Shown piece by piece: positions 422 through 21,827 of a stretch of DNA of 64,000 bases. The notes under the pieces are model-generated. The model saw only the letters and a program-made list of their open reading frames with translations, was not told where the DNA came from and searched no databases. A program made the translations under genes and the position numbers. The stretch's first letter is position 1. Each line of letters begins with the position of its first letter. The stretch comes from Rebecca billardiae RCC1528. Taxonomy: Eukaryota; Protista; Haptophyta. The stretch is from NCBI GenBank assembly GCA_965240325.2, contig OZ251244.1, positions 1 through 64,000 on the forward strand, written 5' to 3'.

Positions 422-458
<37 letters not shown>

Positions 459-541
459 TAACCCTAACCCTAACCCTAACCCTAACCCTAACCCTAACCC
501 TAACCCTAACCCTAACCCTAACCCTAACCCTAACCCTAACC

Positions 542-582
<41 letters not shown>

Positions 583-672
583 CCCTAACCCTAACCCTAA
601 CCCTAACCCCTAACCCTAACCCTAACCCTAACCCCTAACCCTAACCCCTAACCCTAACCCCTAACCCTAACC

Positions 673-713
<41 letters not shown>

Positions 714-776
714 CCCTAACCCTAACCCTAACCCTAACCCCTAACCCTAACCCTAACCCTAACCCTAACCCTAACC

Positions 777-817
<41 letters not shown>

Positions 818-909
818 CCCTAACCCTAACCCTAACCCTAACCCTAACCCTAACCCTAACCCTAACCCTAACCCTAACCCTAACCCTAACCCTAACCCTA
901 ACCCTAACC

Positions 910-950
<41 letters not shown>

Positions 951-959
951 CCCCTAACC

Positions 960-1000
<41 letters not shown>

Positions 1001-1010
1001 CCCTAACCCT

Positions 1011-1048
<38 letters not shown>

Positions 1049-1316
1049 CCCTAACCCTAACCCTAACCCTAACCCTAACCCCTAACCCTAACCCCTAACC
1101 CTAACCCTAACCCTAACCCTAACCCTAACCCTAACCCTAACCCTAACCCTAACCCTAACCCTAACCCTAACCCTAACCCTAACCCTAACCCTAACCCTAA
1201 CCCTAACCCTAACCCTAACCCTAACCCTAACCCTAACCCTAACCCTAACCCTAACCCTAACCCTAACCCTAACCCTAACCCTAACCCTAACCCTAACCCT
1301 AACCCTAACCCTAACC

Positions 1317-1357
<41 letters not shown>

Positions 1358-1518
1358 CCCTAACCCTAACCCTAACCCTAAACCTAAACCCTAACCTAAC
1401 CCTAACCCTAACCCTAACCCTAACCCTAACCCTAACCCTAACCCTAACCCTAACCCTAACCCTAACCCTAACCCTAACCCTAACCCTAACCCTAACCCTA
1501 ACCCTAACCCTAACCCTA
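1..1518. repeat. Telomeric array (CCCTAA)n, i.e. TTAGGG telomere at the chromosome end
   Basis: About 250 tandem CCCTAA units with scattered 1-nt indel variants, starting at window position 1. Confidence 0.99.
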
Positions 1519-2153
1519 GAGCCAAGCCAAGCACGCGCCGCTCTCACCTCTACCCGGCGGATCGGAGCCGCCCGACACATATGCTCGACGGCCAGCAAGC
1601 GCTCGCTCGAGAGCGGGCCCTGCGTGACCGTCCCTACGCACCTGTTTGCTCTCACAGTCACTCGCCGACCCCGCCGAGCGCGCGCGCGGCCGGTAGGTGA
1701 CCAGAGCCAAGCCAAGCACGCGCCGCTCTCACCTCTACCTGGCGGTTCGGAGCCGCCCGACACATATGCTCGACGGCCAGCGAGCGCTGGCTCGAGAGCG
1801 GGCCCTGCGTGACCGTCCCTACGACTACGCAGCTATTTGCTTCCTTAGTCGCTACTCGCCCTTGAGCCGCCGAGCGCGCGCACGGCCGGTAGGTGACCAG
1901 AGCCAAGCCAAGCACGCGCCGCTCTCACCTCTACCCGGCGGTTCGGAGCTACCCGACACATATATTCTCGACGGCCAACGAGCGTGTGCTCGAGCGCGGG
2001 CCTTGCGTGACCCCCTTCGCCTCGCGGCTATTTGCTCTAACTGCCACTGCTGAACCGGCGCCGACGGCGCGCGCGCGGCTGGTGAGGGGCGCTGAGTCTG
2101 ACGAGGCCGCGCCCAGCACATATTCTCGCGACGGCCATCGGGCGTGCTGCTCG
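1518..2153. repeat. Telomere-adjacent ~185-196 bp tandem repeat (3 copies plus a degenerate 4th)
   Basis: AGAGCCAAGCCAAGCACGCGCCGCTCTCACCTCTACC starts at 1518, 1703 and 1899; divergence increases inward. Confidence 0.9.
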
Positions 2154-2179
2154 TACCACCCGGCACGAAGCCGACACGC

Positions 2180-2880
2180 GCCAGCTTTCGCCGAGCCGAA
2201 GGCGAGCGAGAGCTGACGCGCGCTCGCGGCCGCGCAGGCCGCTGCTGCTGCTGCTTCGTGGTGCGCGGCCGAGCCGGCCACGCGTGCGCGCCCTCGCCCG
2301 AGCGCGGCGGCGACAGGTCGGTGCGAGGTGATGGGGCGGCTCATATGCACCCCGTGCGGCGCTGTGCCGCCGCACACCACCTTTCGCCGAGCCGAAGGCG
2401 AGCAAGAGCTGGCGTGCGGTCGCGGCCGCGCAGGCTGCTGCTGCTGCTGCCGAGCACACTGCCGAGCCGGCCGCGCGCGCATTACCGCCGCCACCTCGCG
2501 GCGCGATCTTGGCGGAGGCGAGGGAGCGGCCCATCGGGACCCCGTGCGGCGCTGGCCCGCAGCGCGCAAGATCGCGCAGCGCAGTTGGCGAGCGCGGGCC
2601 GCGGCGCCGACGCGGCCGCGCGCGTGCCGGCTGCCGCTGCTGCTGCTGCCGCTGCTGCTGCTGCCGAGTGCACGGCCGCGCGCGCATCATCGCCGCCACC
2701 TCGCGGCGCGATCTTGGCGGAGGCGAGGGAGCGGCCCATCGGGACCCCGTGCGGCGCTGGCCCGCAGCGCGCAAGCTCGCGCAGCGCCGTTGGCGAGCGC
2801 AAGCTGCGGCGCCGACGCGGACGCGAGCGCGCTGGCTGCCGCTGCTGCTGCCGAGCGCACGGCCGAGCCGGCGGCGGCGC
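2180..2880. repeat. Degenerate ~200-bp tandem repeats with CTG-rich tracts
   Basis: CTTTCGCCGAGCCGAAGGCGAG at ~2185 and ~2381; an ~85-bp block CGCCGCCACCTCGCGGCGCGATCTTGG... at ~2486 and ~2691. Confidence 0.75.
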
Positions 2881-2914
2881 CGGGGCAGGGCGTGCGCGGC
2901 GCGAGCGCCGGAGC

Positions 2915-3940
2915 TTCGGCTTCGCATGCAGCCCGGAGCAGCGCAAACATCGTAACACTATCGGCCGGCGCTGCCCCGCACGCCGCGCGCGCGCTCGCGC
3001 CGCACGAGGCGGCGCGGAGGCGCCGGCCCGCGGCCGGGCGCGGCGCCAACGCGCGCCACTGCCGCGCGCAGGCAGCCGTCACACCGCGCACGCGAAATCC
3101 AACGGGCTCGCCACCGCGCCCCGTGAGCGCCGAGCCGCCGCTGCGCGCGCCTCCGCGCGGCGCACGCCCGAGAGATGACGCCCACACCCGCCCCGCCGGA
3201 GGAGAGGGCCGGCCGCCATCATCGCATTCTGACTGTTGAGCGGCGCCGCTCTGCAAATCTCGCCGAGCAGATCTCGAGCTCTCGGCACGATCTCGGCAGG
3301 CGACGAGCTCACGATGGCGGCTGCCCGCCGCCGCCGCCTCGAGCGCACGCAGCGGCGGGCCGCGTGCACGCGCCGCGCCATCCGGGACACGGCGAGGCGA
3401 TGGGCCGCGCCCGACCGGCGGTCCGCCTTGCGACACGCCGACACACCGTGAGGGCAACAACCATCCCCTGACACAGCACGCCCGCGCCCGCGCCAGCGCG
3501 CTGACGTGTGCGCCGCGCGGTGGGACGAGAGGGCTCCAGCGAGCGCGGTGCGCGGCGCGAAGCCTAAAGGCACGCGTGTGGACCGCGCTGTCCAACAACG
3601 CCCGTTTCATCTCCACCCGCGCCGACGCGCTCTCGTGAGGCCGCGCCGAGGGGCGCGCGGCGGCGCGCGGCGGGACGGGCGCGAGCGCCGGCGGCTCAGC
3701 CTCACGTGCAGTCTGGAGCAGCGCACGAACCGTGGCCCACTCGGCCCGCGTCGCCAAAGTACGCCGCGCGCGCGCACTCGCGCCGCGCGCGCCGCGCCAG
3801 GCAGCGTGGAGACGCGCGCCCGTGCGCGAGCAGCCGCCGCTGGGCACACGCGAGAAGAGGCGGGCCGACCGCTGCGGTGCGTGAGCGCCGCCGCGCGCCT
3901 CCGCGTGGCGCCCGCCCGCGAGAGGACGCCCAAACGGCCG
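2915..3940. repeat. Old direct duplication with ~760 bp offset
   Basis: TGCAGxCxGGAGCAGCGCA at ~2927 and ~3707; GTGAGCGCCG...GCGCGCCTCCGCG...GACGCCCA at ~3123 and ~3881. Confidence 0.6.
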
Positions 3941-3997
3941 CCCCGCTGGAGAGGGTCGACCAGCGAGCGCCATCTCAGGCCGCGCCAGGGGCCGCTC

Positions 3998-4200
3998 TGC
4001 CTGGTTGTCACCGCGGATGGCGGCGTGCGCACGTGCGTCGCACCGCTACCTCGCCACCGAGTCCCGCCTGCTCGTGCCGACGCGCTGGAGGCGGTGCGCG
4101 CGGCGGCCGGTCACGCGCGCCTGCTCACGCTGAGCGAGGCGGGCGCCGTATACGCGCGCGGCCGCAACCAGTGCGGCCAGCTGGGGCTGGTCAGCACGGT
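3998..4200 (+). pseudogene. RCC1-repeat fragment (decayed)
   Basis: Translation AAAGHARLLTLSEAGAVYARGRNQCGQLGL fits the RCC1 pattern xAGxxHxLxLxxxGxVYxWGxNxxGQLG with W replaced by R; no complete gene context. Confidence 0.6.
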
Positions 4201-4564
4201 CGAGCGGCAGGCCTCGGTGCAGCGCCGGGCGCGCGGCCCTAGATCTTACCGTACACGATCACGAGCGCGCACGGCAGCAGTCGTCGTAGACGGTGCAGCA
4301 GCTGCTGCGCACGCCGAGGGCAGGTCGACGAAGTGTTCGATGGGGGGGCGGGGCGGGGGCAGCCTTGACAGACGCGCAGCGCTCGAGCGGCCAGCCTCTC
4401 CGACGCGGGCTCGCGCTCGTCCGCGCCGTCGCCGCGTACAATCCAACGCCCCGAAAGGCAGTAGGCCTCCGTCACTCCGTGTAGCACGATCCACCGGAGG
4501 GCGGCATCCCACCGCTCCATCGCGACCGTGCGGCAGCACCGCCCCGCACTCGGCTACGCTGCCA

Positions 4565-4777
4565 CGGCGGACCACTCGTCCCTCGTCAGCCGCGACGACG
4601 TAGTCTCGGCCGGTTTCTTTAGTCGGCGGTGACTATGCGTATAGCGCGAACCAGCTAGCCAATCGCTAGTCTCATATAGTTTCTAGGCGCCGAATCCGCA
4701 GATCAGATAGCAAGCCCCAGTTTATTCTTAACGTGACAGCTACTCCTTATTGCCCGCTATTATTGCGCCTGCTGAAT
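4565..4777 (-). mobile_element. Decayed partial copy of the MITE at 62453-62960 (left arm, inverted)
   Basis: Collinear with the reverse complement of 62453-62614, with 11 small insertions over 4565-4757. Confidence 0.9.
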
Positions 4778-5164
4778 ACATCAGCACCATTGTCTAAGTC
4801 GATCGCGGGCGGACCGCAAGTCCGCGCCGCGGCCACCGTCGCGTCACGGGCGCGCGCCGCGAGCAGTAGCTAGTACTCGAAGTTGCGGCGCCGTGCAGCA
4901 CTATCGGGCACTTATGCTATCCGCGCGTACTGACTACTGGCGGCGGCGGCGAGCGACTAGGTGAGTAGGCTACTACTACTAGGACGCGCACCGAGGACGG
5001 GCCCCGGGCGCAGCGCCCTACTACGACGCTTCAGAGTCGGTTTACCGGTGGTATATAGAGAGGCACTGCACCGCCGCTTGCTTCGGCGCGCGCCGCCCTC
5101 CGAGCTGATAGCGCGTCGGCTGCACGGCGTCGGCAGAGCCAGTGATAGTCCGCCAGACACAAGC

Positions 5165-8100
5165 GCCCGCGCGCCGAGCGCAGCTGCTCGAGCGCGGAGC
5201 GGCCGCGCGGAAGCTCGGCGCTGCGGGAGCCCACGCGCCTCGACGCGTACGACAAATCGCCGCAGCGCGTTTCCAGCACCGTCCGCCGACTCGAGGCGCC
5301 GCTGGGCGGCGCGCGGCACCGCGCGCACCAGTCTGCAGCCTCGCTCGAGTGCGCGCGCAGCTGCGCGCGCGCCCGTGCGCGCGCCGAGCCCAGCGGCTCG
5401 AGCGCGGAGCGGCCACGCGGAAGCTCGGAGCGGCGGGAGCCCACGTCCCTCGACGCGTACGTCAAATTGCCGCAGCGCGTTTCCAGCACCGTTCGCCGCC
5501 TCGACGCGCCGCTGGGCGGCGCGCGGCACCGCGCGCACCAGTCTGCAGCCTCGCTCGAGTGCGCGCGCAGCTGCGCGCGCGCCCGTGCGCGCGCGCCGAG
5601 CCCAGCGGCTCGAGCGCGGAGCGGCCACGCAGAAGCTCGGCGCGGCGGGAGCCCACGTCCCTCGACGCGAACGTCAAATTGCCGCAGCGCGTTTCCAGCA
5701 CCGTTCGCCGCCTCGACGCGCCGCTGGGCGGCGCGCGGCACCGCGCGCACCAGTTGGCAAGTCTGCAGCCTCGCTCGAGTGCGCGCGCAGCTGCGCGCGC
5801 GCCCGTGCGCGCGCGCCGAGCCCAGCGGCTCGAGCGCGGAGCGGCCGCGCGGAAGCTCGGCGCGGCGGGAGCCCACGCGCCTCGACGCGTACGACAAATC
5901 GCCGCAGCGCGTTTCCAGCACCGTCCGCCGACTCGAGGCGCCGCTGGGCGGCGCGCGGCACCGCGCGCACCAGTCTGCAGCCTCGCTCGAGTGCGCGCGC
6001 AGCTGCGCGCGCGCCCGTGCGCGCGCGCCGAGCCCAGCGGCTCGAGCGCGGAGCGGCCACGCAGAAGCTCGGCGCGGCGGGAGCCCACGTCCCTCGACGC
6101 GAACGTCAAATTGCCGCAGCGCGTTTCCGGCACCGTCCGCCGCCTCGAGGCGCCACTGGGCGGCGCGCGGCACCGCGCGCACCGCCCGGCAAGTCTCGAG
6201 TGCGCGCGCAGCTGCGCGCGCGCCCGTGCGCGCGCGCCGAGCCCAGCGGCTCGAGCGCGGAGCGGCCGCGCGGAAGCTCGGCGCGGCGGGAGCCCACGCG
6301 CCTCGACGCGTACGACAAATCGCCGCAGCGCGTTTCCAGCACCGTCCGCCGACTCGAGGCGCCGCTGGGCGGCGCGCGGCACCGCGCGCACCAGTTGGCA
6401 AGTCTGCAGCCTCGCTCGAGTGCGCGCAGCTGCGCGCGCGCCCGTGCGCGCGCGCCGAGCCCAGCGGCTCGAGCGCGGAGCGGCCACGCAGAAGCTCGGC
6501 GCGGCGGGAGCCCACGTCCCTCGACGCGCACATCAAATTGCCGCAGCGCGTTTCGAGCACCGTCCGCCGACTCGAGGCGCCGCTGGGCGGCGCGCGGCAC
6601 CGCGCGCACCGCCCGGCAAGTCTCGAGTGCGCGCGCAGCTGCGCGCGCCCGTGCGCGCGCGCCGAGCGCAGCGGCTCAAGCGCGGAGCGGCCGCGCAGAA
6701 GCTCGGCGCGGCGGGAGCCCACGTCCCTCGACGCGAACGTCAAATTGCCGCAGCGCGTTTCCGGCACCGTCCGCCGACTCGAGGCGCCGCTGGGCGGCGC
6801 GCGGCACCGCGCGCACCGCCCGGCAAGTCTGCAGCCTCGAGTGCGCGCGCAGCTGCGCGCGCGCCCGTGCGCGCGCGCCGAGCCCAGCTGCTCGAGCGCG
6901 GAGCGGCCGCGCAGAAGCTCGGCGCGGCGGGTGCCCACGTCCCTCGACGCGTACGTCAAATTGCCGCAGCGCGTTTCCAGCACCGTTCGCCGCCTCGAGG
7001 CGCCGCTGGGCGGCGTGCGGCACCGCGCGCACCGCCTGGCAAGTCTGCAGCCTCGAGTGCGCGCGCAGCTGCGCGCGCGCCCGCGCGCGCGCGCCGAGCC
7101 CAGCGGCTCGAGCGCGGAGCGGCCGCGCGGAAGCTCGGCGCGGCGGGAGCCCACGTCCCTCGACGCGAACGTCAAATTGCCGCAGCGCGTTTCCGGCACC
7201 GTCCGCCGACTCGAGGCGCCGCTGGGCGGCGCGCGGCACCGCGCGCACCGCCCGGCAAGTCTGCAGCCTCGAGTGCGCGCGCAGCTGCGCGCGCGCCCGT
7301 GCGCGCGCGCCGAGCCCAGCTGCTCGAGCGCGGAGCGGCCGCGCAGAAGCTCGGCGCGGCGGGTGCCCACGTCCCTCGACGCGTACGTCAAATCGCCGCA
7401 GCGCGTTTCCAGCACCGTTCGCCGCCTCGACGCGCCGCTGGGCGGCGCGCGGCACCGCGCGCACCGCCCGGCAAGTCTGCAGCCTCGAGTGCGCGCGCAG
7501 CTGCGCGCGCGCCCGTGCGCGCGCGCCGAGCCCAGCTGCTCGAGCGCGGAGCGGCCGCGCAGAAGCTCGGCGCGGCGGGTGCCCACGTCCCTCGACGCGT
7601 ACGTCAAATCGCCGCAGCGCGTTTCCAGCACCGTTCGCCGCCTCGACGCGCCGCTGGGCGGCGCGCGGCACCGCGCGCACCGCCCGGCAAGTCTGCAGCC
7701 TCGAGTGCTGCGCGCGCGCCCGTGCGCGCGCGCCGAGCCCAGCGGCTCGAGCGCGGAGCGGCCACGCAGAAGCTCGGCGCGGCGGGAGCCCACGTCCCTC
7801 GACGCGAACGTCAAATTGCCGCAGCGCGTTTCCGGCACCGTTCGCCGCCTCGACGCGCCGCTGGGCGGCGCGCGGCACCGCGCGCGGCAGTCTGCAAGTC
7901 TGCAGCCTCGCTCGGGTGCGCGCGCAGCTGCGCGCGCGCCCGTGCGCGCGCGCCGAGCCCAGCGGCTCGAGCGCGGAGCGGCCGCGCAGAAGCTCGGCGC
8001 GGCGGGAGCCCACGTCCCTCGACGCGTACGTCAAATCGCCGCAGCGCGTTTCCAGCACCGTTCGCCGCCTCGACGCGCCGCTGGGCGGCGCGCGGCACCG

Positions 8101-11100
8101 CGCGCACCGCCCGGCAAGTCTGCAGCCTCGAGTGCGCGCGCAGCTGCGCGCGCGCCCGTGCGCGCGCGCCGAGCCCAGCGGCTCGAGCGCGGAGCGGCCA
8201 CGCAGAAGCTCGGCGCGGCGGGAGCCCACGTCCCTCGACGCGAACGTCAAATTGCCGCAGCGCGTTTCCAGCACCGTCCGCCGCCTCGAGGCGCCGCTGG
8301 GCGGCGCGCGGCACCGCGCGCACCAGTCTGCAGCCTCGCTCGAGTGCGCGCGCAGCTGCGCGCGCCCGTGCGCGCGCGCCGAGCCCAGCGGCTCGAGCGC
8401 GGAGCGGCCGCGCGGAAGCTCGGCGCGGCGGGAGCCCACGCGCCTCGACGCGTACGACAAATCGCCGCAGCGCGTTTCCAGCACCGTCCGCCGCCTCGAC
8501 GCGCCGCTGGGCGGCGCGCGGCACCGCGCGCACCGCCCGGCAAGTCTGCAGCCTCGAGTGCGCGCGCAGCTGCGCGCGCGCCCGTGCGCGCGCGCCGAGC
8601 CCAGCGGCTCGAGCGCGGAGCGGCCACGCAGAAGCTCGGCGCGGCGGGAGCCCACGTCCCTCGACGCGAACGTCAAATTGCCGCAGCGCGTTTCCAGCAC
8701 CGTCCGCCGCCTCGACGCGCCGCTGGGCGGCGCGCGGCACCGCGCGCACCAGTCTGCAGCCTCGCTCGAGTGCGCGCGCAGCTGCGCGCGCGCCCGTGCG
8801 CGCGCGCCGAGCCCAGCGGCTCGAGCGCGGAGCGGCCACGCAGAAGCTCGGCGCGGCGGGAGCCCACGTCCCTCGACGCGAACGTCAAATTGCCGCAGCG
8901 CGTTTCCGGCACCGTCCGCCGACTCGAGGCGCCGCTGGGCGGCGCGCGGCACCGCGCGCACCGCCCGGCAAGTCTGCAGCCTCGAGTGCGCGCGCAGCTG
9001 CGCGCGCGCCCGTGCGCGCGCGCCGAGCCCAGCTGCTCGAGCGCGGAGCGGCCGCGCAGAAGCTCGGCGCGGCGGGTGCCCACGTCCCTCGACGCGTACG
9101 TCAAATCGCCGCAGCGCGTTTCCAGCACCGTTCGCCGCCTCGACGCGCCGCTGGGCGGCGCGCGGCACCGCGCGCACCGCCCGGCAAGTCTGCAGCCTCG
9201 AGTGCGCGCGCAGCTGCGCGCGCGCCCGTGCGCGCGCGCCGAGCCCAGCTGCTCGAGCGCGGAGCGGCCGCGCAGAAGCTCGGCGCGGCGGGAGCCCACG
9301 TCCCTCGACGCGAACGTCAAACTGCCGCAGCGCGTTTCCGGCACCGTCCTTCGACTCGAGGCGCCGCTGGGCGGCGCGCGGCACCGCGCGCACCGCCCGG
9401 CAAGTCTGCAGCCTCGAGTGCTGCGCGCGCGCCCGTGCGCGCGCGCCGAGCCCAGCGGCTCGAGCGCGGAGCGGCCACGCAGAAGCTCGGCGCGGCGGGA
9501 GCCCACGTCCCTCGACGCGAACGTCAAATTGCCGCAGCGCGTTTCCGGCACCGTTCGCCGCCTCGACGCGCCGCTGGGCGGCGCGCGGCACCGCGCGCGG
9601 CAGTCTGCAAGTCTGCAGCCTCGCTCGGGTGCGCGCAGCTGCGCGCGCGCCCGTGCGCGCGCGCCGAGCCCAGCGGCTCGAGCGCGGAGCGGCCGCGCAG
9701 AAGCTCGGCGCGGCGGGAGCCCACGTCCCTCGACGCGTACGTCAAATCGCCGCAGCGCGTTTCCAGCACCGTTCGCCGCCTCGACGCGCCGCTGGGCGGC
9801 GCGCGGCACCGCGCGCACCGCCCGGCAAGTCTGCAGCCTCGAGTGCGCGCGCAGCTGCGCGCGCGCCCGTGCGCGCGCGCCGAGCCCAGCGGCTCGAGCG
9901 CGGAGCGGCCGCGCAGAAGCTCGGCGCGGCGGGAGCCCACGTCCCTCGACGCGAACGTCAAATTGCCGCAGCGCGTTTCCGGCACCGTTCGCCGCCTCGA
10001 GGCGCCGCTGGGCGGCGCGCGGCACCGCGCGCACCAGTCTGCAGCCTCGCTCGAGTGCGCGCGCAGCTGCGCGCGCCCGTGCGCGCGCGCTGAGCCCAGC
10101 GGCTCGAGCGCGGAGCGGCCGCGCAGAAGCTCGGCGCGGCGGGAGCCCACGTCCCTCGACGCGAACGTCAAATTGCCGCAGCGCGTTTCCGGCACCGTTC
10201 GCCGCCTCGAGGCGCCGCTGGGCGGCGCGCGGCACCGCGCGCACCAGTCTGCAGCCTCGCTCGAGTGCGCGCGCAGCTGCGCGCGCCCGTGCGCGCGCGC
10301 TGAGCCCAGCGGCTCGAGCGCGGAGCGGCCGCGCAGAAGCTCGGCGCGGCGGGAGCCCACGTCCCTCGACGCGTACGTCAAATCGCCGCAGCGCGTTTCC
10401 AGCACCGTTCGCCGCCTCGACGCGCCGCTGGGCGGCGCGCGGCACTGCGCGCACCGCCCGGCAAGTCTGCAGCCTCGAGTGCGCGCGCAGCTGCGCGCGC
10501 GCCCGTGCGCGCGCGCCGAGCCCAGCGGCTCGAGCGCGGAGCGGCCACGCAGAAGCTCGTCGCGGCGGGAGCCCACGTCCCTCGACGCGCACGTCAAATT
10601 GCCGCAGCGCGTTTCGAGCACCGTCCGCCGACTCGAGGCGCCGCTGGGCGGCGCGCGGCACCGCGCGCACCGCCCGGCAAGTCTGCAGCCTCGAGTGCGC
10701 GCGCAGCTGCGCGCGCGCCCGTGCGCGCGCGCCGAGCCCAGCTGCTCGAGCGCGGAGCGGCCGCGCAGAAGCTCGGCGCGGCGGGAGCCCACGTCCCTCG
10801 ACGCGTACGTCAAATTGCCGCAGCGCGTTTCCAGCACCGTTCGCCGCCTCGACGCGCCGCTGGGCGGCGCGCGGCACCGCGCGCACCAGTTGGCAAGTCT
10901 GCAGCCTCGCTCGAGTGCGCGCGCAGCTGCGCGCGCGCCCGTGCGCGCGCGCCGAGCCCAGCTGCTCGAGCGCGGAGCGGCCGCGCAGAAGCTCGGCGCG
11001 GCGGGAGCCCACGTCCCTCGACGCGTACGTCAAATTGCCGCAGCGCGTTTCCAGCACCGTTCGCCGCCTCGACGCGCCGCTGGGCGGCGCGCGGCACCGC

Positions 11101-14850: not shown

Positions 14851-15326
14851 CGTTCGCTGCGAGTGAGCGAGAGGCACTGGACTGCGTCGGTTCGCTCGGC
14901 GCCTGATGATAAACCCAGTTCACCAATTGGCCGTCCTGTGCCGCCGCCAACCTTGCCTATTTGCCTAAGGCCCAGGAGCATCACAGCGAGTAGGTTGTTC
15001 GGGGTCGTTGTGCGAGCGCACAGAGCAGGCTCGAAAGTCCTTCGTGGCACGAGAAGAGGGTGGCCAAGATGGCAGCCGGACTTGAGCTCGGCCGCCTGGC
15101 TCGGGCCGAATGGCAGGCAGGTGTTGATACGGCGCATTGCGCTCCCACCGTCCTCTTAGACAATCAGCACAGCAACGACTTCTTTTTTAAAGCGGCCGTT
15201 AGCGTGTCCATCGGCCGGATTATTTTACGGAAAATTACTATGCGCTGCGCGCGCGCGCCCAGCGGGCGGCGCGCGCGCGCGACTAGTCCCCCCTGCATGC
15301 CCTAACCGTCAGCTGCCTGATTCCCG

Positions 15327-18300
15327 CTACCCAGCCCCGCTGCCGTCGCGCGCGACATCCGCGCCGTCGCTCACCGTCGCCGAGGCCGAGCGCGCCGCCG
15401 CCCTCAATTTGCTCTTGAGTGCCGACAAGTCCTCCTCCGGAAGCCCAGCCTCCTCGCGCACGAGCTTGCGCGCCGCGATGTACTCGTCGACCAGGTCGTG
15501 CGCGCCGGCCTTCGCCTTGCGCTGCCATTCGCGCTGCCGCTTGCCCTCCTTCTTCAGCCAGAGCCGCCGCACCTTGTCGCCGAACTCCTCCTCCGCCCAC
15601 GTCGCAAGCGACACGCGGCGCAGGAGCTGCGCGGCCGTCGAGATGTGCGGCTGCACCGTCGACTTCTTCCCCTCGGCATACTCGCGGACGAACGAGTCGA
15701 GCGACTTGCGCGCGTTCACGAGCGGCATCGCCCGCTTGGTCACCTGCACGAAGTGCTCCTGCACCTGCTCGTCCGCGAGCTGCACGAGGTGGCCCCACCG
15801 CCTGATCAGCAGAGGCAAGACGAACCGCGCGATCGTCTTGTACTGCGAGGTGACCGGCTTGAGGACGAACAGGTCGAGCGCCTCGACCCACGCCGTCGCG
15901 GCTGCCTCAACCTCGTCCGCACGCTTCGCGCGGCCATCGTCATCGTCCGTGTAGCCGCGCGAGGAGACGAGGTCGTGCAGCTGCCACGTGAGCATGAGCA
16001 GGCGGCAGAAGAGTGCCATGCGCGGCATGTCCGCGATCTCGGCCTTCAACTGCGCCTCGTCGTCAAAGCCGATCTCGTCCATCATCTCGCGCTCCTCCTC
16101 GTCCTGCATGTCCGAGATGCGCGCGTCCTCGTCGCCGCTGTCCGCCGCGCCCGCGCTGCTCGCGCCGTCGAGATCCGCGTCGATCTTCCACACGACCTGC
16201 ACCAACGCCCAGAAGACCGCGTGCGTGCGCAGCAGCGAGATGCCGTCGCCGCGGAGGTCGGGCACGCCGATCTCGTTGGTGCGCGTGCGCCGCTTGGGCA
16301 CTCGCACAGGCACGCCCGCGTTCTTGAACAGGACGATCAGGTCGTACTTGGTGAGCGGCGCGTCGCGGCCGTACAGCTCGTCCACCTCCCTCCACAGCGC
16401 CGACAGCACCGGCTTGAAAGTGTCGTGCTTGAAGTGCATGATGCCGGGGAAGTAGTTGACGTGCTCGAGCTCCAGCTGCGGTAGCAGCCACTGGTTCTCG
16501 TGCAGCTTCTGGTCGACGATGCGCTCGGCGTCCTTCGAGTCGTCGGCGAGAAGGCGGCGGCGCTTGGTCATCTCGGCGTCGCACTCGCCCTGGTCGGCAG
16601 GCGTGACCTTGCACGCAGGGCACGTCACGCCCGGGTCCGCGTGGCACAGCGCGCGCGCGCGCTTGTACGTGCGCAGCCGCCACTGAGGCGAGCCGCCGTC
16701 CGCGCCCGCCTCCTTGACCGCCCACACGTTGAAGCGGAGCGGCGAGACGTTGTGCGAGCCCTGGCCGGCGAGGCTGGCAAGGTTGACATAATCGCCGGTG
16801 TACGTGATGATGGCCTTCTGCTCCTCCGCGTAGTCGGCCGCCTCGCCGCCGCCGCCAAAACCGCCGCCGGCCGCGCCGCCCGCCGCGCCGGCAGCGCCGG
16901 CCGCGCCGGCCGCGCCGGCCGCGCCGGCCGCGCCGCCGGCCGCGGCGGCCGCGGCGGCCGCGGCGGCCGCGCCGCCGGCCGTGCCCGCGCTCGGGTTGCC
17001 AGCCGCGCTGCTCGCCGCGCCGCCGGCCGCGCCACCGGCCGCGCGGACGCCAGCGCCGGCGGTGCCGCCAGCCACGCCGCTGCCGCTGCCGCTGCCGCCC
17101 GCGCCGCCCGCGCCGCCCGCGCCGCCGCCAGCGCCCGCGCCCGCGTTACCAGCCGCGCCGCCGGCCGCGCCGCCGGCCGCGCGGACGCCAGCGCCGGCGG
17201 TGCCGCCAGCCACGCCGCTGCCGCTGCCGCCCGCGCCGCCCGCGCCGCCCGTGCCGCCGGCCGTGCCGCCGGCCGTGCCGCCGGCCGCGCCGCCGGCCGC
17301 GCCGCGGGCCTCGCCGCGGCCCGCGCCGCCGGCCGCGCCGGCTGTGACGGCCGCGGCCGCGCCGCCGGCCGCGCCGGCCACACGTGCGGTGGCGGCAGCA
17401 GGCGGCGTCGGTCGCGGCGGAAGCAGGCCGCTCCGGATCACGTCATTGATCGCGTCGGCGTGCGCACTCCATAACTCGGACATGTCCGAGTCCGGCCGCT
17501 CCGAGATGGCGATCGCCTCTGACGACGCGAGCGCGCCGTAGTTGACGCCCCAGCCGTTGCGCACGATGGCGATCGTGGCCGTGCGCGAGTGAGCCGTGTT
17601 GCCCGCGTCCGCCGAGAGGAGGAGGACGTGCGGCTGCCCGCGCGGGCGCGCGGACTTGCCGTTGCGCTCCGAGCGATCCAGCACGGCGTGCACGGCCTGC
17701 GCCCACGGCCGCGCCGCCGACTCGCTGCCGATCATGAGCACGCCCGCGCCCGCGTGCTCGCGATCGCGCTGCGCGACCTCTCGAGAGCCAGCCGCCGGCG
17801 GCGGGATCGGGTGGCGGATCGGCTCGCGGCCGAAGCCGCCGCGGAAGACGGTGCGGGCCGAGTGCTCGCCCGTCACCGGGTGGATCTCCTTCCCCACCCA
17901 CTCGCGCCACGTGTCGAACTGCGCGTCCGTGACGTTCTTCGAGACGAGGTAGCCGGCGACGTCGTGGTGCGTCTGATGAGATTGAATCTCGCGCACAACG
18001 CCCACTGCGCCGCGGCGCTGCTGGAGGTAGGCGTGCCTCGCCCACGGCTTGCGCGAGCCGTCGTCTGCGCCCTCGAGCATCTCGTGCAGCACGAGGTCCA
18101 TCACGTCGTCGGGCGTGCCACGCAGGATGTGCTCGATATGGTCCGCCTCCCCCCGCCTGCGCTTGCGGCACGCGTTGCTCGAGACCGAGAGAGATGGGCG
18201 CTGAGCGCGCTGCCGATGAGCGCCGTCCAGCCCGTTCAGCTCGGCGAGGTGCTCGAACTTGCCGGCGGCTCGGTCGGCGCGCTTGCGCGCGGCGTCCTTG

Positions 18301-19634
18301 TCGCGCTTGAGCTCGACAAGCTGCGACTGCTGCTCGTCGCAGAGCGACTGGGCGTGCGCGCACTGCTGCTCGAGCAGCTGCTGCGCGTGCAGCGCAGCCG
18401 CGAGCTCGTGCTCGACGCCGCTCAGCGCGTCAGCGGCGATGTGCTCGGTCGCGGTGAGGCGGCGCTCCAACTCGAGGGCCCGATCGCGCTGCGCGTCGGC
18501 GGCGCGCTGCGCAGCTGCGGCCCGCGCGTTCGCCTCTTCGAGATCGCGCCGAAGCTTCGCCTGCGCCTGCTCCGCCTCGGCGTCGTGGCGGGTGCGCGCA
18601 TCCGCGCTGTGCCCGGCGCGGTACCCGGCGAGCACAGCGCGCCTCTCCGCGGCAGCAGCGGCGGCGCGCGCGGCGGCGATCCGGTCGAGGGCCTCGCGCT
18701 CGATGTTCTCGCACTCGAGCTTGACGGCGGCGATCACCACGTCGAGAACCGGCTCGAGATCGACGGCGGCCGAGTTGACGATGTCCTCGCGCTGCCGCAC
18801 CGCGTCGTCGCGCTCGCGCTCGAGCTCGCCGTTGAAGTGCTCGAGCTCGGTCACACGTGTGCGCAGCGAGGTGAGCTCGAGCTCGGAAGGGACGCTGCGC
18901 GTGCTGTGCGAGCGCCGCAACTGCTGCTCGAGCTCGGCCACGTGCTGCAGCTCGGCCATGCGCCTTCGACCCCGTGCTGTCTGCTCGTCCGCCTCTGCCT
19001 CGGGCGTCGGCGCCACGCTGCCAGCCGAGCGCGTGAGAGGCCGCTGGCGGGTGGGCGCGGCCGAGAGCAGCACGGCAGGCGGCGGCGACATGAAGGCGGG
19101 CGAGGCGACGGCAGGTGACCTCGGCGGCAGCAGCTCTTCCGCCGACCCACCGACGAACGACTGCGCCGCCGCGCCAGCGAGGAGGAGTGGCGGCGCGGGC
19201 TGGCGGGAGGCGCTGCGCGTGACCGCGGGCGACGGCGCAGCGGCAGCAGGAAAGCTCAAGGCGGAGGAGGCGTTGGTAGTGGCGGGCGAGAAGACGAGGT
19301 GGTCGGCGTGAGCGGGAAGAGACGAGAAGCGGGCAGCGACGACGGCGGGAGACAAATCGGCGGCGGCGGCGGCGGCTGATGCCGCCGCCTCGCCGCCATC
19401 AGCTCGAAGGAGAGCGAGCGCGCGCGCGGTCGGTGGACGGGCGGCATCATGCGGCGAGGACAGCGGCTGCGGCTGCGGCCGCGGCCGCGGCCGCGGCCGC
19501 GGCTGCGGCGGCTGCACGAGCGGCGGAGGCAGGTGCGGAGGCGCCGACGGCAGCTGCGGCGGTGGCGGAAGCGACGGCAGCGGCGGCGGCCCCAACGGAG
19601 GCAGCGGCTGGGTGTCCGCGACCGCGTAGGGCAT
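15327..19634 (-). CDS. RAG1/Transib-like DDE transposase with N-terminal Pro-rich and coiled-coil region; start uncertain (first ATG 19634, frame open to 20063, possible splice from ORF1)
   Basis: Ordered motifs RPSLSVSSNACRKRRR, VTDAQFDTWR, LLLSADAG (D 17607-9), YTGDY (D 16791-3), PGIMHF, LRGDG, TSQY..LPLLIRRWGHL..ADEQVQEH (E 15756-8) parallel the RAG1 core. Confidence 0.75.
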   Translation of the reverse strand: MPYAVADTQPLPPLGPPPLPSLPPPPQLPSAPPHLPPPLVQPPQPRPRPRPRPQPQPLSSPHDAARPPTARALALLRADGGEAAASAAAAAADLSPAVVAARFSSLPAHADHLVFSPATTNASSALSFPAAAAPSPAVTRSASRQPAPPLLLAGAAAQSFVGGSAEELLPPRSPAVASPAFMSPPPAVLLSAAPTRQRPLTRSAGSVAPTPEAEADEQTARGRRRMAELQHVAELEQQLRRSHSTRSVPSELELTSLRTRVTELEHFNGELERERDDAVRQREDIVNSAAVDLEPVLDVVIAAVKLECENIEREALDRIAAARAAAAAAERRAVLAGYRAGHSADARTRHDAEAEQAQAKLRRDLEEANARAAAAQRAADAQRDRALELERRLTATEHIAADALSGVEHELAAALHAQQLLEQQCAHAQSLCDEQQSQLVELKRDKDAARKRADRAAGKFEHLAELNGLDGAHRQRAQRPSLSVSSNACRKRRRGEADHIEHILRGTPDDVMDLVLHEMLEGADDGSRKPWARHAYLQQRRGAVGVVREIQSHQTHHDVAGYLVSKNVTDAQFDTWREWVGKEIHPVTGEHSARTVFRGGFGREPIRHPIPPPAAGSREVAQRDREHAGAGVLMIGSESAARPWAQAVHAVLDRSERNGKSARPRGQPHVLLLSADAGNTAHSRTATIAIVRNGWGVNYGALASSEAIAISERPDSDMSELWSAHADAINDVIRSGLLPPRPTPPAAATARVAGAAGGAAAAVTAGAAGGAGRGEARGAAGGAAGGTAGGTAGGTGGAGGAGGSGSGVAGGTAGAGVRAAGGAAGGAAGNAGAGAGGGAGGAGGAGGSGSGSGVAGGTAGAGVRAAGGAAGGAASSAAGNPSAGTAGGAAAAAAAAAAAGGAAGAAGAAGAAGAAGAAGGAAGGGFGGGGEAADYAEEQKAIITYTGDYVNLASLAGQGSHNVSPLRFNVWAVKEAGADGGSPQWRLRTYKRARALCHADPGVTCPACKVTPADQGECDAEMTKRRRLLADDSKDAERIVDQKLHENQWLLPQLELEHVNYFPGIMHFKHDTFKPVLSALWREVDELYGRDAPLTKYDLIVLFKNAGVPVRVPKRRTRTNEIGVPDLRGDGISLLRTHAVFWALVQVVWKIDADLDGASSAGAADSGDEDARISDMQDEEEREMMDEIGFDDEAQLKAEIADMPRMALFCRLLMLTWQLHDLVSSRGYTDDDDGRAKRADEVEAAATAWVEALDLFVLKPVTSQYKTIARFVLPLLIRRWGHLVQLADEQVQEHFVQVTKRAMPLVNARKSLDSFVREYAEGKKSTVQPHISTAAQLLRRVSLATWAEEEFGDKVRRLWLKKEGKRQREWQRKAKAGAHDLVDEYIAARKLVREEAGLPEEDLSALKSKLRAAARSASATVSDGADVARDGSGAG

Positions 19635-19999
19635 CACGGCGGCGGACGATGGATCGGATGGCGCGTCGGCGCAGAGGCCGGGCGTGAGACCGAGGACTGG
19701 AACATGCGAGAGAGGCTGAGAATGAGAATGCAGATGGGCATGCGTGGGATCGAGGGCAGAGAGATCGAGGGGGGGATGCGGCGCGACCGCGCCGTCACCA
19801 GCTGGCGCGCGACGCCATCGGGCGCTGCTCGCTGCTCGGCGAGTGGCGGTCAGCTGCTCGCGCTGCGCGCGGCGCGCTCTCCAGTCCGCGCGCTTGCGCC
19901 GTGAGACGTCGGACTCGGGCGGCGCCGCCGGTGCCGCCGCGGCGGGCGCCGCGGCAGGCGCTGCCGGCGGCGCGCCCGTGAGCTCCGACGGGCCCTTCG

Positions 20000-20857
20000 T
20001 CACAGACGGCGTGCGCCGCCAGCCCCGCCTCCGCCGCGGCGCATCGAGACGCCCTGCGCGCACACCTTGAGCAGCTCGCCGCTCACGTCAGCGCGCCCCT
20101 TCTCCTTCTTGAAGCGCCATGGCTGCATCAGCGCGTAGCGCTCGGCGTCGACGCTCACGCCGCCCTGCGCGTCCTGTGGCGCGTGCAGGCCGCCCTGCGC
20201 GTTGAGCGAGATCACGCCCACGCGCACGTGCGCGAACTGCTGGTACGCGCCGTCCGGATCGAGCCGATGCATCTCGGTGTGCTCGATCGAGAGCGAGTGC
20301 ACCGTGTTGATCGCCGAGAGGTGCCGGTCCGTGCGCGCGCCGCCGAGCGCGTTCGCCCGCAGCGGCTTCGGGACGCGGCGCATGCCCAGGTTGAGCCACG
20401 TCGAGATGCGCTCGGGCTGGTACGAGCTCACGGTGCGCCGCGTGCGGTCCTTCTCTCGCGTCTCGTGCACGACGCCCTGGTCGTCGAGCGAGGTGAACAT
20501 CGGCGAGTAGAGGGCGTCACGCGGGAACAGCGCCAGCTTGGCCTTGCGCAGCAGGTTGCCCTTCTTCCGGCTGCCCTTGATGGCGACGAAGTTGTTGACC
20601 TTGCGCTTGACCTCCGCCAGGTAGTTCTCGTTCGGCATGATCGAGTGGTCCACCTCGCTCGCCGCCTCGCGCGCGCGCAGCATGAGCGTCTCGTGCTCAG
20701 CCGCCTTCTCCGCGGCCGCCGCGGCCATGCGCCGCCGCACAGATGCGGCAGAGACCTTGCGCCCGATGCCGTAGCCGCCCTTCCGCTGCAGCTTGACCTT
20801 CTTCGGCTTCGCGCAGGAACGCTTGCCCTTGCCCACGGTAAGCACAGCCGTCGTCAT
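20000..20857 (-). CDS. Transposon ORF1, 285-aa basic protein of unknown function (or first exon of the transposase)
   Basis: ATG start, GC3-biased coding-like codons, Lys/Arg-rich N-terminus; AAG|GTGTGC donor-like site at 20065. Confidence 0.75.
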   Translation of the reverse strand: MTTAVLTVGKGKRSCAKPKKVKLQRKGGYGIGRKVSAASVRRRMAAAAAEKAAEHETLMLRAREAASEVDHSIMPNENYLAEVKRKVNNFVAIKGSRKKGNLLRKAKLALFPRDALYSPMFTSLDDQGVVHETREKDRTRRTVSSYQPERISTWLNLGMRRVPKPLRANALGGARTDRHLSAINTVHSLSIEHTEMHRLDPDGAYQQFAHVRVGVISLNAQGGLHAPQDAQGGVSVDAERYALMQPWRFKKEKGRADVSGELLKVCAQGVSMRRGGGGAGGARRL

Positions 20858-21419
20858 TGCTGCGCGCGGCGAGCGCGGTCCCGCGCGGCCGTGCCAGGCG
20901 CAGCCGCAGCAAGTTAGTCTGATGCAAATTCCCGGTCACCCATGCAAAAGTAAGCGTTCCCGCTGAGCATGTGCGTGGATCACGAGTAACCCGCCGCCTG
21001 AATACAAACTCCGCGCCCCTCCATACACTTCCTGCATCCCCGCGCGCGGCGGCGTGCAGGCGGGCGCAGATTCGCACCGTGTTACGAACAGACCTAGCAA
21101 AGTAGATCGGCGTGGCGGGTCGGGACGCGGAGCGGGTGCGGGGCAGGTGGGGGATAGGTTGGGGAACACCCGCGATTAGAGCACCGGTGGCGCAGCGGCG
21201 ACGTGGACGCCGCCACACGCGCACGCACGGCGCACGCGCGCACCGGGACTTTCAACTTCGCGTCGGAGCTCTGGACGACCGTCGGTTGGTCCGAGGCGGC
21301 GCGAGGAGGCTCTCGGGATTGTGGCCGGACGCCCGGGTTGAGCCGTTAACGGCCGAAAATCAATTTGTTGGAGTTTCCTTAACGGCCGCTTTAAAAAAGA
21401 AATCGTTGCTGTGAGTTAT

Positions 21420-21605
21420 TATTGTGCCAATAACCCCACATATATATATATTAATATATATGCATCATCAGCATATCGGATATTATAAAGTAGCTGCGGC
21501 TAGTGCCTAATGAGTAATGGTCAGGTGACTGTCACTCAGAACAACATCAATATATGCGGGTACGTACATCCCCATAATTATATTATTTACAAATGATGGG
21601 AATCC
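21420..21605 (+). mobile_element. Decayed continuation of the hAT-interior homology (58317-58400)
   Basis: TAACC(CC)ACAT..TATATATA and TATATGCGGGTA..CCCATAATTA..AAATG..GG occur in the same order in both places. Confidence 0.6.
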
Positions 21606-21827
21606 GAAGAAGGCTTTTTCAGTGATGGCGAAAATGGGTCTAATGCTGCGGAAACTCAAAGTCAAAGGGCTGCGTGGATGCGGGCGCAGACTCAGCGTCC
21701 GACTCGCCGTCGGAGTCGCCAGCGGCACCGCCGGCGCCGTCGTCGCCATCGTCGTCGGCACAATCGTCATCAGCGTCATCGCCGCCCGTCGCGGATGAGC
21801 TGCAGGTGGGGGAGGACTGCTATGCTC

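Follow-up and report, generated by a model that had tools for sequence, protein, structure and literature searches.

Do transposons with a RAG1-type transposase exist outside animals, and would they tell us something about the ancestry of the V(D)J recombinase? The question is raised by a 6,246-bp element at positions 15168-21413 of the first 64,000 nucleotides (nt) of contig OZ251244.1 (assembly GCA_965240325.2) from the haptophyte Rebecca billardiae RCC1528, a stretch hereafter called the window, in which the element lies 13.6 kb from the telomere. A preliminary description took it for a young, intact-looking, divergent member of the RAG1/Transib/Chapaev clade. Our results indicate that it is very probably an autonomous cut-and-paste transposon, which encodes a DDE transposase (catalytic residues D, D and E) of predicted RAG1 fold and belongs to a marine-algal lineage inside the CACTA-Mirage-Chapaev-Transib (CMCT) supergroup. 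The family, hosted by haptophyte-type algae, is best described as a new lineage of this known CACTA–Transib supergroup, orphan at the sequence level and sparsely sampled.

The element is bounded by terminal inverted repeats (TIRs) of 34 nt with 1 mismatch between the arms, located as had been described, and its termini read CACAG...CTGTG. The full TIR pattern occurs at only 2 sites in the 64-kb window, 0 being expected from shuffled sequences. Alignment with the ends of relatives showed that 2 blocks are conserved: the tip reads CAC.GC and positions 25-34 read GCG.C(C)GTTA, and both blocks are common to the window element and to a more distant element (L003) presented below. The inner block AACGGCCG is found once more in a subterminal position at the right end, a copy that we regard as a putative transposase-binding site.

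Evidence for mobility came from the Logan contigs of the one public run that contains this DNA, which we aligned to positions 15050-21040 of the window. One contig follows the left flank of the element to 15167 and then continues in the right flank, matching the window from 21419 onward. This empty site has a single AG, and AG is present on either side of the filled one, so that the element inserted here with a 2-bp target site duplication (TSD). Other contigs of the run reach 15168 from unrelated flanks, and one omits 881 bp inside the element (15801 to 16683), a sign that the same genome has a deletion derivative at another place; the missing piece extends from the CxxC motif to just short of the catalytic glutamate. 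Of 19 aligned contigs, 7 are at least 99% identical to the element, and the occurrence of three identity classes (at least 99%, 95-99%, and 90-95%) indicates that several copies coexist in the genome with older subfamilies and with one or more deletion derivatives. The empty site, the other flanks, and the deletion derivative, all in a single run, bear out the proposal of a young, intact-looking element, which has moved recently and is probably active.

We also considered that the locus might hold a relic that no longer moves or a gene domesticated by the host, the long open reading frame (ORF) being a chance frame in DNA of 76% GC, where 31 ORFs of at least 100 amino acids (aa) occur within 7.5 kb. 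The element contains two minus-strand frames, ORF1 (20857-20003) and a long frame (20063-15330) that is open over 1,578 codons and whose numbering is used throughout for the transposase. ORF1 and residues 395-1578 of the long frame display a strong codon-position GC periodicity, with a GC content of 0.91-0.95 at third positions (GC3) and of 0.42-0.50 at second positions (GC2); residues 1-142 display none and residues 143-394 only a weak one. Because the ~368 codons preceding M369 lack periodicity and the start of the called gene in a relative (L008) aligns with this residue, we take M369 as the probable start of a 1,210-aa transposase. The coding part, stop codon excluded (18959-15330), thus specifies an N-terminal coiled coil, then a basic patch, and then the RAG1-like catalytic core. 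Between the ORF1 stop and M369, L008 and the window share no nucleotide similarity. The frames, which had been described as uninterrupted, are indeed open, but the first ~368 codons are probably non-coding and ~190 further residues correspond to a degenerate minisatellite. This in-frame repeat would encode Gly/Ala-rich residues, is devoid of codon periodicity, appears disordered in the structural model (predicted local distance difference test [pLDDT], 24-40), and is absent from every relative in the family alignment. Its expansion took place between helix 1 and strand 4 of the RNase H domain, where some relatives (P0036, P0038, P0015, and P0047) have an insert rich in Cys, suggesting that this is an insertion-tolerant point. 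The non-coding aspect of the first 368 codons would suit a chance frame, yet the periodicity of the core is strong, the catalytic residues are kept in homologs, the TIRs are near-perfect, and the empty site, the other flanks, and the near-identical contigs (7/19 at 99% identity or more) all speak for mobility. We therefore consider a relic or chance frame to be highly improbable and largely refuted already.

The RAG1-like motif strings listed in the preliminary description are all present in the claimed order, namely, RPSLSVSS at residue 622, VTDAQFDTW at 711, LSADAG at 816, TGDY at 1089, PGIMH at 1206, LRGD at 1270, TSQY at 1405, and DEQVQE at 1431. Conservation was assessed on a 45-sequence family alignment, the denominators given in Table 1 being the sequences that cover each position. 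The three residues assigned to the catalytic triad, D819, D1091, and E1432, are conserved, as is E1436 of the (N/D)EQVQE motif, in 25/28 sequences. A C(2)C motif, a hallmark of the CMCT clade (PMC12730594), follows the second aspartate, and a conserved H(2)H motif sits ~60 residues past it. C1148, C1151, H1210, and H1213 may form a zinc site, which is putative.

Table 1. Features of the element and of its two genes, with positions in the window (codon and motif rows use long-frame residue numbers)
Feature	Position	Strand	Remarks
Left TIR	15168..15201	+	3' side of the genes; starts CACAGCA, ends GCGGCCGTTA
Right TIR	21380..21413	-	Begins CACAGCA too; inverted-repeat search
TSD, left copy (AG)	15166..15167	.	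Immediately outside the element end
TSD, right copy (AG)	21414..21415	.	Immediately outside the element end
Subterminal copy of TIR inner block, AACGGCCG	21348..21355	.	Right end
Transposase gene, M369 to stop	15327..18959	-	1,210 aa; codon periodicity, start of relative, 33 homologs, AlphaFold model
D819 codon, first catalytic aspartate	17607..17609	-	LSADAG (xSxDAG); invariant, 16/16
D1091 codon, second catalytic aspartate	16791..16793	-	YTGD ((T/V)GD); invariant, 19/19
C1148/C1151, C(2)C motif	16611..16622	-	CPAC (CPxC); 23/24 and 21/23
H1210/H1213, H(2)H motif	16425..16436	-	HFKH in G(V/I)MHxxHN; 22/24 and 22/25
E1432 codon, catalytic glutamate	15768..15770	-	(N/D)EQVQE; 26/27
Degenerate 9/12-nt minisatellite, in frame	16862..17379	-	Between D819 and D1091; Tandem Repeats Finder
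Open frame upstream of M369	18960..20063	-	Probably non-coding intergenic spacer; weak or no codon periodicity
ORF1	20000..20857	-	285 aa, ATG start; accessory protein with unassigned fold; GC3 0.94

The AlphaFold2 model of the transposase, whose core (model residues 150-265, 451-670, and 720-830) reaches pLDDT values of 76-97, places the triad as in an RNase H fold: D819 lies on model strand 191-201 (strand 1), D1091 directly follows model strand 462-469 (strand 4), and E1432 stands one residue ahead of model helix 812-827. In a Foldseek search of the PDB, the first 21 matches were all RAG1 chains (E about 0.02-0.13), and RAG1 accounted for 41 of the top 50. Superposition of model residues 79-878 on RAG1 460-1007 gave a VIA-align Z score of 20.2, with 434 residues aligned at a root mean square deviation of 5.0, and a Foldseek-independent Z score of 17.8. 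The corresponding scores (VIA-align and Foldseek-independent, respectively) were 17.2 and 17.2 for the amphioxus RAG1-like protein BbRAGL, 16.5 and 11.8 for HzTransib, and 8.3 and 8.3 for Hermes; the Foldseek-independent scores of the P element and of Tn5 were 10.7 and 7.0. The modeled domain arrangement is thus predicted to resemble that of RAG1, BbRAGL, and HzTransib over ~430 residues (RAG1 460-1008), and a RAG1-like fold of the transposase is well supported for a predicted model. The RNase H-like DDE core that had been anticipated is accordingly what the structure prediction yields, with the presumed catalytic residues where they had been assigned. The basic patch, which had been likened to the nonamer-binding domain of RAG1, was modeled with low confidence (pLDDT 46-65), and its basic character is all that relatives have in common there.

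An exhaustive HMMER search with residues 640-1578 against 1.84 billion representative proteins (E of at most 0.001) retrieved only 33 representative homologs, mostly fragments, which originate from marine and other metagenomes, from MMETSP transcripts, and from 1 annotated protein of Pavlovales sp. CCMP2436. That several of them (P0015 and P0043-P0046) are assembled MMETSP transcripts (Transcript_5096/5098/5100) shows that some family members are transcribed. The most informative relative, L003, is a complete element of 5,957 bp at positions 444-6400 of a 6,676-bp metagenome contig (JGI 3300017818, Ga0181565_10011449); its TIRs are perfect, 33 nt long, and begin CACTGC, and it has the same two-gene layout, with a transposase broken by one frameshift. 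A closer relative, L008 (NCBI GCA_046766215.1, contig JBJNVX010059428.1, 1-2242), is 76% identical in nucleotide sequence and is a typical non-autonomous derivative with an internal deletion: the tail of ORF1 remains, as do the coiled-coil N terminus and the final ~220 residues of the transposase, whereas the catalytic core has been lost. The terminal repeat of L008 is nearly the same as that of the window element, and both elements end at the same CACAGCAACGA; the end of the L008 element reads CACAGCAACGAATTATTTTTTAATGCGGCCGTTAAC and is followed by an AT-rich flank. The Pavlovales locus (L002) holds only a truncated copy without recognizable ends, and positions 8775-10544 of a 363-kb eukaryotic metagenome contig (L007; ENA ERZ25073789) hold a degraded family fragment among BTB-domain genes. 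Of two metagenome scans for the end pattern, one returned nothing and the other only the L003 contig again, and they yielded no further filled sites.

To what group of transposons does this family belong? The CMCT clade defined by Kojima comprises EnSpm/CACTA, Mirage, Chapaev, Transib, Plavaka, ESTA, Lanisha, and RAG1, and its hallmarks are the C(2)C motif, 5'-CA..TG-3' termini, and duplications of 2-5 bp (PMC12730594). The family possesses a C(2)C motif, CA..TG-type termini, and a 2-bp AG duplication. Several observations nevertheless weigh against its inclusion in this supergroup or against the picture of a mobile, RAG1-folded element. First, we found no sequence-level link to described transposase families, and the placement relies on the predicted fold and on short motifs. 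The transposase matched no Pfam family and no PDB sequence; no transposase-related Pfam domain, RAG1, Transib, and CACTA included, was detected in 32 family members; and core segments of eight members gave only noise when compared with Pfam at E values up to 10. Searches of PDB sequences with the single sequence and with the family profile returned only linker or ribosomal-protein noise, and neither RAG1 nor HzTransib. Neither the transposase core nor the 45-sequence alignment retrieved anything in word-indexed protein searches, the Gly/Ala repeat having probably supplied most of the words, and an Atlas feature search with the piece from the second aspartate to the C terminus was uninformative. 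Second, CMCT members are expected to have an H(3-4)H motif just before the glutamate, and none was found here; the 30 residues preceding E1432 (consensus SQYxTxxxxxxPxxIxxWG) contain no conserved His pair. Third, the mean pLDDT of the whole model is only 65. Fourth, although the copies and the empty site whose search had been proposed at the outset were both recovered, the empty-site contig may not represent the exact ancestral sequence: it is one TTA unit short and differs in a downstream (AT)n run, and it may derive from another allele or from a paralogous subtelomere. Last, no matching 2-5 bp duplication flanks L003, a metagenome contig that may join the flanks of different copies and that we used neither for nor against the 2-bp TSD.

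The preliminary description had gone further and allied the element with RAG1 and Transib in particular, a reading in which the family would be sister to, or lie within, Transib and would give the V(D)J recombinase a relative outside animals. RAG1, amphioxus RAG1-like, and HzTransib do provide the best matches among solved structures, the catalytic residues occupy equivalent secondary-structure elements with a CxxC after the second aspartate, and the bipartite ends start with CAC (CACAG here). However, no solved CACTA-type structure figures among the matches, and the PDB ranking therefore cannot separate Transib from CACTA or favor the former. A shape search of the ESM Atlas in fact aligned the model with a predicted CACTA (Transposase_21) cluster (TM score 0.44 over 535 residues) as well as with full-length RAG1 (TM score 0.43 over 494 residues), so that the fold places the element in the supergroup and not beside RAG1; the predicted succession of a dimerization and DNA-binding (DDBD)/pre-RNase H region, an RNase H DDE core, and a Zn-binding insertion is likewise shared with RAG1/Transib without being exclusive to them, the CACTA cluster matching equally well. 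The best Atlas matches were unnamed eukaryotic clusters, of which the top one (778 aa; its few labeled members are streptophytes) might be Lanisha-like. A language-model feature search retrieved RAG1 clusters at 0.90, but with low recognition.

Sequence comparison is less favorable still to this alliance, as the algal family bears no detectable sequence or profile similarity to RAG1 or Transib: none of the 32 members has a RAG1 or Transib Pfam match, and the family profile retrieves neither RAG1 nor HzTransib from the PDB. The zinc ligands of RAG1 are C727/C730/H937/H942, that is, a C(2)C after the second aspartate and an H(4)H shortly before the glutamate; no His pair equivalent to H937/H942 was found in the algal transposase, which has, unlike RAG1/Transib, a long N-terminal coiled coil. 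Its 2-bp TSD also differs from the canonical Transib duplication of 5 bp, a difference that is not decisive. Transib relatives with 3-bp or TA duplications were indeed reported in a 2026 preprint (10.64898/2026.08.26.747230), which makes the 2-bp TSD compatible with a Transib affiliation. Altogether, we judge membership in the Transib/RAG1 lineage unlikely: the RAG1-like fold supports the proposed clade at the level of CMCT, but a specific closeness to RAG1/Transib is unsupported.

Could the family then be a very divergent member of CACTA/Mirage/Chapaev (CMC) proper, most like Mirage or Plavaka? EnSpm/CACTA elements have a Transposase_21 (TNP2) domain, 3-bp duplications, and CACTA/CACTG termini. 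The algal elements resemble the CMC group in their CAC(T/A)G termini (CACTG in L003), in their C(2)C motif, in the two-gene layout seen in CACTA elements, and in the alignment of the predicted CACTA transposase cluster across 535 residues. The 2-bp TSD lies inside the CMC range of 2-4 bp and has the length found in Mirage and Plavaka. The MH-x3-N spacing of the GVMHxxHN motif is also closer to the D.MH...N motif of CACTA than to that of RAG1, which is a lead only. On the other hand, neither Transposase_21 nor any other CACTA-related Pfam domain (DUF4218 and Transpos_assoc included) was matched at E values up to 10, no H(3)H was found ahead of the glutamate, ORF1 is unrelated to named families, and the element departs from EnSpm/CACTA by its TSD of 2 bp rather than 3 bp and by its CACAG termini. 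This placement appears possible to us, if somewhat doubtful. Lanisha from moss and ESTA and Plavaka from fungi offer a further comparison, made here through published descriptions: they have been linked to EnSpm/RAG1 by remote homology only and have CA..TG-type ends and 2-3 bp duplications (PMC12730594, PMC8245031), as does the algal family in its remote link, type of ends, and short TSD. They are, however, reported to retain the H(3-4)H motif, and their hosts differ from the haptophyte-type algae and marine plankton in which our family is found. Within CMCT, no evidence places the family closer to RAG1/Transib than to elements of the CACTA type.

Two further features had been invoked to connect the element with V(D)J recombination. 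The first is the likeness of its CACAGCA end to the heptamer of the recombination signal sequence (5 of 7 bases), to which we attach little weight: L003 begins CACTGCT, only CAC.G is shared when a CACNNTG-like heptamer is sought, and CAC... termini are found throughout the supergroup (PMC12730594). The second is the lack of a RAG2-like kelch partner. ORF1 is the only other gene of the element, and no kelch or RAG2-like partner was detected by Pfam or in its low-confidence model. The protein has no match in Pfam or in the Atlas, and its model, which is unreliable (pLDDT 49.7), consists of helices and about five strands and shows no propeller. In contrast to ProtoRAG and to RAG1-RAG2, the algal element thus carries an unrelated 285-aa ORF in place of a RAG2-like kelch gene. 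A homolog of ORF1 (P0001) has 50% identity and a stop at the same position, the C terminus and stop are retained in L008, and the upstream ORF of L003 (296 aa) is of similar size and aligns weakly with ORF1 (E 0.024); from these sequences, the two-gene layout looks like a family trait. ORF1 may assist in end binding or in regulation.

By analogy with the solved RAG1 and HzTransib complexes and with general DDE chemistry, a transposition mechanism can be proposed that takes as its starting point what is directly supported, namely, the ends and the TSD, the insertion polymorphism with multiple copies and deletion derivatives, the conservation of the triad, and the prediction of an RNase H core accompanied by RAG1-like accessory domains. 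A transposase dimer, for which the coiled coil might serve as a dimerization module, would bind the bipartite ends through the terminal CAC.GC and the inner GCGGCCGTTA block. Nicking at the CAC tip would then release the element, probably via hairpins on the flanking DNA, and the 3' ends would be joined to the target with a 2-nt stagger. In this scheme, we infer the chemistry, the formation of hairpins, the binding of zinc, and the role of ORF1.

To our knowledge, the mobile elements of haptophyte-type algae have barely been described, and an apparently active DNA transposon in these organisms widens both the diversity and the host range of the supergroup. Pfam and profile searches fail to reach its enzyme, which is nonetheless predicted to fold like RAG1. 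The family provides a test case for identifying the ancestral features of the RAG1 fold and for asking if the His pair before the glutamate is dispensable. As its 34-nt ends are defined and both intact copies and an empty site are known, the element is also a candidate genetic tool for very GC-rich microalgae. What we describe is a new branch of the CACTA–Transib supergroup that does not connect directly to V(D)J recombination; the bearing on the ancestry of the V(D)J recombinase that had been claimed for the element is weak as things stand, and the element alone leaves the current view of V(D)J origins as it is. There is a small chance that no other non-animal family is closer to Transib/RAG1 and that this haptophyte lineage groups with Transib and not with CACTA-type elements. 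If so, the RAG1-type recombinase architecture would date back to early eukaryotes and would be able to work with a 2-bp stagger, a coiled-coil N terminus, and a non-kelch partner.

The setting of the element is subtelomeric, as had been noticed: a (CCCTAA)n telomere array of the TTAGGG type occupies positions 1-1515 of the window. Directly after it, at 1518-2037, a 185-bp subtelomeric repeat is present in 2.7 copies, and a 205-bp repeat is found at 2468-2851. Outside the telomeric end, the window has mostly 70-86% GC; for comparison, the genome of Diacronema lutheri has 73% GC (PMC8379373). This composition, taken with the sources of the homologs, would suit a pavlovophyte-like host. Short AT-rich islands in DNA that otherwise has 75-80% GC adjoin family members, at 21414-21640 on the right flank in the window, on both flanks of L003 (380-443 and 6401-6440), and on the 3' flank of L008 (2243-2280), which suggests that the family prefers AT-rich targets.

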